DNA of 63,679 nucleotides, filler included, from Choristocarpus tenellus KU-1152 (taxonomy: Eukaryota; Protista; Phaeophyceae): NCBI GenBank assembly GCA_964200185.2. It is 12 parts of 12 records of this genome, joined end to end, with 100 filler letters (N's around TTAATTAATTAA, not from the genome) between each part and the next. Parts side by side here need not be neighbours in the genome. Positions count along the whole stretch, not along the records: positions 60,855 to 63,679 come from CAXNAD020024426.1; 11 more parts are not named here. The stretch is one strand, 5' to 3'. This document shows positions 60,138 to 63,679 of this stretch, piece after piece. The translations under genes were made by a program, and so were the position numbers. Under the pieces are notes generated by a model, which was not told where the DNA came from, searched no databases, and worked only from the letters and a program-made list of their open reading frames with translations. Within the stretch, counting starts at the first letter, position 1. Each line of letters opens with the position of its first letter.

Positions 60138-61868
60138 GTGGGGGAATAGGGCCATGAATTGTTGTGTACGATACGATGGCCATGATTTGGTTTTCGTGGA
60201 AGAGTGTTTCTTTTGATCGTTTGAAATATATATACATATATACATATATATTTTAGGTGTGCTGTGCACATGCTTTGATTTAATGGCACGAGCAGGAAGA
60301 TCTGGAGTTGATTTAAGATTGTTGTACTCAGGTTTGTCTTCGCTCTATCCTGCTTGTCCGCGGACGGATTCTCAGGAGACAACTTAGTGCACAGGGGTTG
60401 TGAATTGAACACAAGCGGGATAGGCTTTTGAACAAGCTGTGCTTATTTTGGCATTTTCAAGAGATCAGATTGTTGGTTTGGGCTGGATCGCTTGCTGAGC
60501 AGCAGTTGGATGAAGTGTTGTTAGGACTGGATGAGTGTCACAGTGGCATTCAGTAGATTTTTGAGATGCGTTGGTGGTCAATGCATGCTGCTTGCTGGTG
60601 ATAGTTGTGGCACACCCCTTTGGTTTTGGTTACGACCTGTGCCGTTTTATCCTGAGGAGCAGAAAGGAAAATGAAAATAAATATGACAATTTTGTTCTAG
60701 GCTTCATGTCGGGTTGTTTCCTTTTTCTGTTTAGATGCAGACACCCCTCCCCCCNNNNNNNNNNNNNNNNNNNNNNNNNNNNNNNNNNNNNNNNNNNNTT
60801 AATTAATTAANNNNNNNNNNNNNNNNNNNNNNNNNNNNNNNNNNNNNNNNNNNNGACCTCACACATGCCAGTTACACTTAGGGGGGACACTGTGACCTGC
60901 AGCCACTGCACCATCTCCAGAAACCTTGACTCAATCTGTGCTACAATATGGTCGTAACGTATCTCAAAAAAAAGAAGAAAGAGCACCATCTCGATATTCC
61001 TGGTCATCTTTTCTCATTTATAGTTCTGAACTCTTATAGAGCCATCAAGAATATTCTGAGAAAAAGAATTATGACATTTTTCTTCAAACCGATCTTTCAC
61101 TAAAAACAAAACCAATAGGAAGTGAGATCTTTGTTCTGGATACCAAGAACAAGCACCTCTCAAAATGCGACTCTTGCAGAGCAAGAAGAAAAGGACTCAT
61201 TTCCTATTGTTATATATTTATTTAATCCGCATCTCGATGATCAGTTATTTTATGAAAAACTAAAAAAATAGTTGTCATATTACTTCTCATTTACTATCCC
61301 TGCCAAAGAGGTAAGAAATTCAATACTCTCCTCTCTCTTTGAGAAGAGGGCACACTACTCCACCTAATTACTCCATCTTCCAGAGTCAATTACGGAGAGA
61401 GAGGCCTTCGTCTCAAAAGGCACCCACCCTTGCCCTGGATCAATTCACACTAGTTTAACAAGTACAAAGACGTAAGGCGGGTGCCACTCAAATCAACCCC
61501 ACCACAAAAAAACTACACCAAACCTAGATTCCCTGTAATAACCATTTCCCTCAGTGGGATAATGCTTAAAATTTAACCCATACACAGACACACATCAGGC
61601 ACACACCTCAAGTTGTGTCCGAGACCTAAGATCTATAATACTCCTAAGATACATATCAAATCCACCTAATCCCCCCCCACATTCTCACTTTCCGCCAGAG
61701 GTAGAGTTAAACCTAACCCTGACCATATCAACCTTGTCTCTATTAAAGGCACACTCTCCCTGCTTGCACAACCTCAGTACACAAGCTACACAAACCGCAT
61801 TTGTAGCCTGCTTGCCACTCTTTCGAATTACATTGAGTAGGCATCTGTGCCAATGGGAAAAACCCACT

Positions 61869-63476
61869 CTAGCTTGGTGGTAAATGCTGGGTGCCTTGCC
61901 TCAGTGACTCAACCGTGCTGTGGGCAGAGGAGGAATAGCTGCTGTCGTCCTGGGCGGATGATGACGATTTCTCCTCACTGACCTGCCGCTCCTTTGCAAC
62001 CTTCTTATCTTGTCGGGTGGACTAGCAGGAGATGAGGAGGTCAACCAGGAGTGGAGTGGTATCAATGCAAAAAAAGAAAAGGGGGCAATTGAATTAGCTT
62101 TGTTGTGTGTGTTGGCACTGCACTGGTATCAATTCTTGCAAGTTGTGACCTTAAAAGGAATTATCGTGTTGTAAATTTAAGCGCAGTACAACAATGCCCT
62201 TCCCCAACAATCACTAACAAATAATGAATTGAGAGGTCCACATCTCCCACTTGTGTACCTCCTACGCCCGCCAACTGCAGTCACCTCTTCCAAGTGAAAA
62301 TGTAACCGATTTTCAATATAAATTTTTAACCTCTTTATGCCTCTTTCCGATCCGCATTACTCCTACCCACAACAAACCCCCCCCCTTAAAAAAAGGAATT
62401 CAAAATTTAGAAGAACAAGGAAAAAAATTAGATAATTTCCAGTATGTACTAACAAACATGACACTGCAACATGAAAATAAAAACATAAAAATATAATAAA
62501 ACAAAAGAGTACCAAAACATCATCATAACAGGTAACACATGCCTTCCTAATTCCTCCCTCCACATCCTCTCTTGCACCACTCTCATCCAATCCCACAAAT
62601 TACCCTTCACACTAACAACAGAAATAAATGCCTTCCCTCCATGCAAAATCCCAACCGTGACTGAAATCAAGTACAATTTAAACTCATTCCAAGTCGATAG
62701 AACAAACAAATAACACCACCCGCAACACACCCCGCTACGCTCAGAACCTACAGAAAATTCCCAGAATTCGACTTGGTTCGAACAACAATTCCTCACCTTT
62801 GACTTCGAACCAATGTCCAACGAACCCGACTTGTTCCTTCCGGGAGGAATCACATTGGTGCGGCCCTGCACAGACGGTCGAAACAAACGTACATTGTTAA
62901 TAAAAAAAATATGCGTAAGTTGAGTCGAACAATTTTGTGTTAACAAGAATAAAAAAAATGATCACATCGCACTCTACTTACTGGAAGGGTGTTAGAGCAC
63001 AAAGGCTCTGGAAAAGAGGTTTCAATGATGGGGATTACACTTTTACCACTATCAACACTTACCACTTATCAAAATCGTTGGGAGCAGGAGACACTGAACG
63101 CAACACACCCCACAGAGTCAAACACAGAAACATGAAATGAATTACGAAATCAATTAATCGTTCTTTTTTAACACGATGTCACAACCAACACCAATGCGAC
63201 GCTCGTTACAAGAGTTTTTTTTTTCAATTCACATAATAAAAGCTCATCCATTATAAAAGTTTAAAATGAAGTACGATCAAACCAGGAGAACAAGAGAGGG
63301 CCGGCCACGCACACACTGCAGTTCAAACCAGCAACCGTACTTCAACTCACCCTCAAGATTACAGTAGGATCCATCCCCAAGGAAGTGCACTCGATGTCGC
63401 CCGTGACGCAGCCTGTGTTTCTGATCTGCATCTTCTCACACTGGACGTTACCAACAAGAATACCCAACACATACAC
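61869..63476 (-). CDS. Bactofilin (polymer-forming cytoskeletal) domain protein, 5'-partial, intron-containing
   Basis: Phase-0 GT-AG exons 63476-63351, 62865-62797 and probably 62021-61869 splice to VYVLGILVGNVQCEKMQIRNTGCVTGDIECTSLGMDPTVILR|GRTNVIPPGRNKSGSLDIGSKSK|STRQDKK..(Ser-rich)*. The first about 47 aa match the C-terminal windings of the bactofilin beta-helix (V.V.G.+.GN+.....+...G.V.GDI....L.+....+.G). Confidence 0.8.
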
Positions 63477-63679
63477 CTTTTTTTGGCAATGTGGGTGGAG
63501 ATGGCAACAATGAAGGAAGGGACAAGGAAATTAAAAAACAAAAAAATAATTCAACATGAATGCTTCCCCTTAGCAAGACAGGAGGAAGAAGGGGGGGGGG
63601 GGAGGGGGGGGGTTGTGTACATTGACACAAAAGAAAAAAAAAGGATGCAGGGCTTCATGATCACGTAAGGTTCGGTTGG

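Follow-up and report, generated by a model that had tools for sequence, protein, structure and literature searches.

A transcribed bactofilin-domain gene with brown-algal relatives and two alternative 3' transcript forms

Results

Exon-intron layout of the locus

The window is a stretch of 63,679 nucleotides, and our analysis covers its piece at positions 60855–63679 (42% GC), in which the gene lies on the minus strand. Read in the direction of the gene, the piece opens with the 3' end of an intron (63477–63679), with an AG acceptor at 63478–63477 and the upstream exon beyond the piece. Exon A (63351–63476; 126 nt, 42 codons, from VYVLG to VILR) has the acceptor ...aaaaaaag/ and the donor /gtgagt, and encodes about two windings in the second half of a bactofilin β-helix. 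It is followed by intron A/B (62866–63350; 485 nt, GT..AG, phase 0), the position of which is conserved in brown algae, and by exon B (62797–62865; 23 codons, from GRTNV to SKSK; acceptor cag/, donor /gtgagg), which completes the domain with GRTNV and begins a basic, Ser-rich tail. After intron B/C (62022–62796; 775 nt, GT..AG, phase 0) comes exon C with the acceptor ctgctag/. The part of exon C that is common to two transcript forms (61900–62021) encodes a tail rich in Ser, Lys and Glu, which is likely disordered. In one form, called colinear here, exon C is extended over 61869–61899 by 10 codons and a TAG at 61871–61869; the extension has a GC donor at its start. The remaining 60855–61868, covered by a contig of the sequencing run X3, is 3' UTR of the colinear form and also the first part, at least 1 kb, of a GC-AG intron of the second, spliced form. 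All three junctions are in phase 0, and exons A, B and C are all open and in phase. GC content is about 0.50–0.55 in the exons and 0.31–0.45 in the introns; more specifically, it is 0.37–0.41 in the 485-nt intron as compared to about 0.50 in the exon.

We detected no further gene in 60855–61868, where Pfam, Rfam and tandem-repeat searches gave no matches. Pfam gave only noise on eight other ORFs of the piece, and an NCBIfam search of the three exon peptides returned no match. Rfam, tandem-repeat, repeat and promoter/terminator scans of the piece found nothing of note. In the upstream intron there is a long G/C homopolymer-like tract (63583–63612; poly-C on the minus strand), a low-complexity repeat that draws dozens of short high-depth contigs in the runs X1 and X2; the X1 contig breaks there.

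Transcript evidence for splicing

Three public runs (X1, X2 and X3) hold the stretch; all are from one study and none is recorded as RNA. Contigs of X1 and X2 are colinear with the genome, as expected of genomic DNA, and one X1 contig covers 60855–63601. X3 contigs skip 62022–62796 (775 nt; joint 62021/62797), and an X3 contig skips 62866–63350 (485 nt; joint 62864/63350, cut +1), the skipped segment being GT..AG on the minus strand in both cases. X3 contigs cover exon B and link it to its neighbours at both ends, and a contig over 61900–62021 is joined to it. An unspliced X3 contig over 62118–62826 has a depth far below that of the exon contigs, and most of the 485-nt intron is without any X3 contig. 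Because of this exon/intron pattern we infer that X3 is a cDNA library; the evidence for splicing consists of contigs of this one run, the kind of which is unrecorded. At position 62229, inside the 775-nt intron, the X2 and X3 contigs have a T>C change that is absent from X1 and that probably reflects polymorphism among the samples of this study.

The initial annotation had proposed short phase-0 exons with canonical splice sites. Exons A, B and C lie where it placed them, and since X3 contigs remove both the 485-nt and the 775-nt intron at exactly the predicted GT..AG sites, both proposed junctions are supported by these cDNA-like data.

An X3 contig that crosses exon A departs from the genome at the acceptor 63478 and continues for 81 further letters. 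Thus a preceding exon exists, and it lies outside the piece. Thirty of the 81 letters read in frame VTSNLTGLEE directly before VYVLG. This peptide, known from the loose end of one contig, fits the ..V[IV]SNLxGLxE of the orthologues and is identical at 7 of 10 residues to Nemacystus P0008 and at 8 of 10 to the Pylaiella type-1 protein P0026. The expectation that the N-terminal half of the protein lies beyond the window is borne out to this extent: the upstream exon is outside the piece, and its last 10 residues, as read from the contig, fit the family.

Two 3' transcript forms

X3 contigs branch at 61900/61899, where the genomic CTGAG/GCAAGG makes a consensus-like GC donor. The colinear contig (60855–61929) leads to the TAG at 61871–61869 and then into a 3' UTR of at least 1 kb; it is far deeper than the contig within the 775-nt intron. 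The other contig carries 28 letters beyond 61900, and this continuation is absent from the window even with 3 mismatches allowed. The acceptor exon of the GC-AG splice is beyond 60855, outside the piece. The intron of the spliced form includes the stop codon that the colinear form reads in frame. Thus the TAG, proposed initially as the end of the gene, is used by the colinear form, while the second form splices it out at 61900/61899.

The spliced form reads ..STVESL/SPSSPSKASG. Because this resembles the tail of the Scytosiphon orthologue (..STSALSPESVGSRASG), the spliced form seems to remain homologous to the orthologues' long tails, as judged from this short stretch. It is apparently also the more abundant one, with a contig depth of about 1300 as compared to 300 for the colinear form, contig depth being a poor measure of abundance. 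The Discosporangium gene model stops soon after STVE, as the colinear form does. The C-terminal end in the initial model therefore corresponds to one of two forms, and probably not to the one that keeps the tail homology. We also considered the GC-AG splice as a conserved intron and rejected this, as in type-1 genes of Pylaiella and Scytosiphon the last exon runs through this point without a break. The GC-AG intron is therefore specific to the lineage of the window.

Assignment of exon A to the bactofilin family

Searches and folding were done exon by exon. Exon A alone matches the Pfam bactofilin profile PF04519 at positions 53–93 of 98 (E 2.9e-5; 24.7 bits, cut-off 27.9); note that 41 of the 98 profile positions fall on this exon. 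As the match is under the cut-off and leaves the assignment open, an exhaustive HMMER search was made with exon A. This phmmer search against 1.8 billion proteins gave 19 matches, the best with E 2e-11 and 58 bits. Twelve of these cover essentially the whole exon (11 all 42 residues, one short ORF residues 5–42), at 60–71% identity in the search and 60–74% over the 42 residues. All named relatives among the matches are brown algae, namely Discosporangium mesarthrocarpum, Pylaiella littoralis, Cladosiphon okamuranus and Nemacystus decipiens, and a word search with the Discosporangium protein adds Laminaria, Ectocarpus, Scytosiphon and Hapterophycus. The full-length relatives tested have a complete Bactofilin domain (61–68 bits, profile positions 1–97, same cut-off of 27.9), and brown-algal orthologues carry precomputed PF04519 matches.

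A family HMM built without the window gives exon A 71.9 bits, while the 197 shuffles scored reach at most 4.8. Conserved positions of exon A are intact, G5, G9 and G26 being invariant. In the relatives the exon A segment is preceded by ..V[IV]SNLxGLxE and followed by G[ST][AT]NV, as in the transcript of the window, and the GRTNV with which exon B begins has its counterpart in GSTNV or GSANV at the same exon start in the orthologues. The initial identification as a bactofilin is thereby upheld: with 71.9 bits and E 2e-11 to brown-algal bactofilins, exon A encodes the second half of the β-helix domain. Exons B and C give no signal above shuffles with the family HMM, as expected of low-complexity tails. 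The description of the tail as charged, Ser-rich and probably disordered agrees with the Ser/Lys-rich, likely disordered sequence of these exons. In searches against sequences of the PDB, exon A has a single match, Caulobacter BacA (2N3D, E 0.51).

The matches P0005, P0013, P0015, P0018 and P0019 were not accepted as kin. These are long proteins, four of which match in 4–5 short stretches and P0018 in none; P0005 and P0013, the sequences of which were read, are internally repetitive.

Fold of the domain

The family profile finds two distinct sequences only in the PDB, the Thermus bactofilin TtBac (6RIA, 6e-11) and BacA (2N3D, 1e-9). The AlphaFold model of the Discosporangium orthologue P0002 has an all-beta core at residues 87–186 with pLDDT >90 and tails of low confidence. 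Foldseek ranks the TtBac filament subunit 6RIB first (target TM 0.91, rmsd 1.2 Å, 98 columns), with 6RIA and 2N3D next. When exon A was folded alone from an alignment of homologous segments, the model had pLDDT 88 and strands at 6–8, 11–18, 23–25 and 28–35, in the register of residues 145–174 of P0002. Its Foldseek matches are non-significant because the fragment is too short; the best superposition is on 6RIA (TMq 0.77, rmsd 1.1 Å). The predicted right-handed β-helix, which had been expected from the first, is found in both models, the handedness being read from the superposition.

Shared gene structure and phylogenetic placement

The same 126-nt exon with phase-0 AG/GT boundaries is present in Discosporangium (L001, 3908–4033) and in the type-2 gene of Pylaiella (L002, 5818–5943), and in both loci the exon that follows begins with the Gly that begins exon B. 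Six naive ORF calls from other assemblies have Q before the segment (CAG acceptor) and V after ..VVLK (GT donor), which indicates, as judged from these flanking residues, the same exon boundaries there too. The shared boundaries mean that both introns flanking exon A predate the split of these lineages.

Exon A is nearest to Discosporangium (31 of 42 residues identical), with 26–29 of 42 identical to other brown-algal type-1 proteins. In a 42-column tree the brown-algal group including the window is separate from a metagenomic group, and the type-2 paralogues are recovered as a clade with the window outside it; otherwise the tree is mostly unresolved. This is a nuclear eukaryotic gene, all of whose named relatives are Phaeophyceae and whose intron positions are shared with them, and it fits the stramenopile bactofilins. 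The piece has 42% GC as compared to 50–55% in four brown-algal bactofilin loci (L001–L004), so the composition of the host differs from that of the sequenced brown algae with the closest orthologues. The organism, a stramenopile alga, may accordingly be an early-branching member of the brown algae or belong to a sister lineage.

P0016/P0024 (ENA and JGI metagenome contigs), P0030 and P0031 form a separate, well-supported group of bactofilin-domain proteins. Their identity to exon A is 50% for P0016/P0024, 31% for P0030 and 29% for P0031, the ending ..DP.V.. G(T)xNVNP is the same, and the tails are long and either acidic or basic. These proteins probably belong to other eukaryotic (protist) lineages.

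Discussion

According to our results, the piece very probably contains the 3' part of a bactofilin-domain gene that is nuclear, spliced and transcribed, an orthologue of brown-algal type 1, with its β-helix and filament assembly inferred from homology. Brown algae and oomycetes were already known to have this family, to which the gene adds a new member. Bactofilins were reported in stramenopiles (oomycetes, Ectocarpus and, patchily, pelagophytes) and in ascomycetes by Deng et al. in 2019, who named the Ectocarpus protein D7G0L1 (bioRxiv 10.1101/617639), and later work repeats this picture (PMC11459167). In the literature searched, the study of Deng et al. is the sole paper that links bactofilins with a brown alga or with Ectocarpus. 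The initial annotation regarded the gene as hidden, which is overstated; it is neither hidden nor new in kind, since stramenopile bactofilins including that of Ectocarpus have been published and the orthologues have precomputed PF04519 matches.

By homology, the full protein would contain a domain of about 96 residues folded as a right-handed β-helix. Subunits would stack end to end into non-polar filaments without a nucleotide, as in TtBac, BacA and Phytophthora PiBac. At the N-terminus, type-1 orthologues (P0020, P0025–P0028; residues 1–12) have the conserved MKFLRRESERG(E/D)F, with MKLFKAESERRRG in Discosporangium. The membrane-targeting consensus of bacterial bactofilins is MFSKKKK (PMC12448750); a short N-terminal peptide of this kind is typical of bactofilins, though not universal. 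MKFLRRESERG is loosely like it and may be the counterpart of the membrane-targeting peptide; in that case the N-terminus known from the orthologues may tie the polymer to the membrane, as the bacterial peptide does. The disordered, Ser/Lys-rich tail with its two splice forms may recruit or regulate partners.

Polymerisation of the bacterial TtBac and BacA involves an interface Phe (F105 in TtBac, F130 in BacA). The F130R variant of BacA is polymerisation-deficient (PMC12448750), and the F105R mutant of TtBac is the form that was crystallised (PDB 6RIA). The residue of exon A that aligns with this Phe is Leu41 (VILR), and the position is Leu in all brown-algal relatives, i.e. hydrophobic and non-aromatic. 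This replacement throughout the algal family would agree with a protein in which the bactofilin fold was retained and polymerisation lost, and which has some other role, for example that of a β-helical adaptor or a tail-driven scaffold. The long tails that differ between paralogues agree with such a role, and the one eukaryotic bactofilin with demonstrated polymerisation is from an oomycete. We nevertheless regard this explanation as unlikely. Leu is still hydrophobic and the oomycete homologue polymerises; moreover, the core of the β-helix is strongly conserved, with its three invariant glycines and 60–74% identity across lineages, and the orthologue model superposes on a filament subunit with an rmsd of 1.2 Å. 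In a filament-forming protein, the reading that we prefer, the hydrophobic Leu41 would take the place of the interface Phe.

A truncated relic or a transcribed pseudogene, with only the C-terminal half of the domain retained and the part upstream of it lost or disrupted, would also leave the first half of the domain invisible in the piece, and the early stop in one of the two 3' forms could be read in this way. This is very unlikely, because exons A, B and C are open and in phase with the conserved positions of exon A intact, the transcript runs upstream into an exon that matches the family (7/10 residues to Nemacystus P0008, 8/10 to Pylaiella P0026) and contig depth is far higher over the exons than within the intron. 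The Pfam score under the gathering cut-off might point to a resemblance by chance or to bacterial DNA in the assembly, but both have a negligible probability in view of E 2e-11 to eukaryotic orthologues, 71.9 bits as compared to at most 4.8 for shuffles, and spliceosomal introns that are removed in transcripts at positions common with brown-algal genomes. Contamination in particular is ruled out by the shared intron positions together with the transcript evidence. The initial argument that introns speak against it was sound: they are removed in X3 transcripts, and their positions are those of annotated brown-algal nuclear genes.

The age of the introns that flank the second half of the domain, and their presence in several lineages, speak for a long vertical inheritance of the bactofilin gene after any bacterial transfer. 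Ectocarpales have in addition a type 2 paralogue (L002 3001–3429, Pylaiella P0010; Cladosiphon P0012) with an N-terminal extension of about 140 residues, in which a conserved hydrophobic stretch (CCCWALLLLAS) is followed by VEG/FAV.P. This paralogue retains an ancestral-looking MKFF/MKFL start internally. The VEG/FAV.P junction presumably resembles the signal-peptide/ASAFAP-type junction of complex-plastid presequences. One may speculate, and we hold this broader picture to be doubtful, that an acquired bactofilin gave rise to a small brown-algal gene family with fixed introns, a membrane-peptide-like N-terminus, alternative C-terminal tails (a lineage-specific GC-AG intron holding the stop of the short form) and, in the Ectocarpales, a type 2 with a bipartite plastid-type-like presequence. 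If this is true, the plastid-type presequence on type 2 would locate a bactofilin filament at the plastid or within it.

The locus adds a transcribed bactofilin from a lineage of different base composition, with two forms of the C-terminal tail. It reveals no new kind of system, and it would be reasonable to localise and knock out members of the family in a tractable brown alga.

Comparison with known bactofilins

The closest known genes are those of brown-algal type 1, i.e. Discosporangium CAN0092653.1 (P0002) and unnamed products in Ectocarpus, Pylaiella, Laminaria and Scytosiphon. They have the same 126-nt phase-0 exon and, like the window, the next exon starting with G-x-x-N-V, the preceding ..SNLxGLxE and a Ser-rich basic tail. 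Besides the base composition, there are two differences. Residue 4 of exon A is Leu in the window (VYVLG) and Glu in all other brown-algal type-1 proteins (VYVEG), and the tail exon of the window has the GC-AG splice, whereas type 1 of Pylaiella and Scytosiphon has one uninterrupted last exon.

PiBac of Phytophthora infestans (PITG_07992, D0N980), likened here by its description, is likewise encoded by a stramenopile nuclear gene with a PF04519 domain, and this oomycete gene is expressed around sporulation. Oomycete and brown-algal proteins fall into one stramenopile cluster of matches (bioRxiv 10.1101/617639). PiBac forms filaments in vitro and is the only eukaryotic bactofilin demonstrated to do so; in that study filaments were demonstrated for PiBac only, and the Ectocarpus construct was not successfully expressed (bioRxiv 10.1101/617639).

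Bacterial TtBac (6RIA/6RIB) and BacA (2N3D) have the same domain and fold, with disordered tails flanking a helix of about six windings. Their identity to the algal family is about 20–24%, and the bacterial interface Phe stands against Leu in the algae. The algal gene differs from bacterial bactofilins also in its spliceosomal introns, in much longer tails and in the N-terminus of its orthologues, which is MKFLRRESERG and not MFSKKKK.
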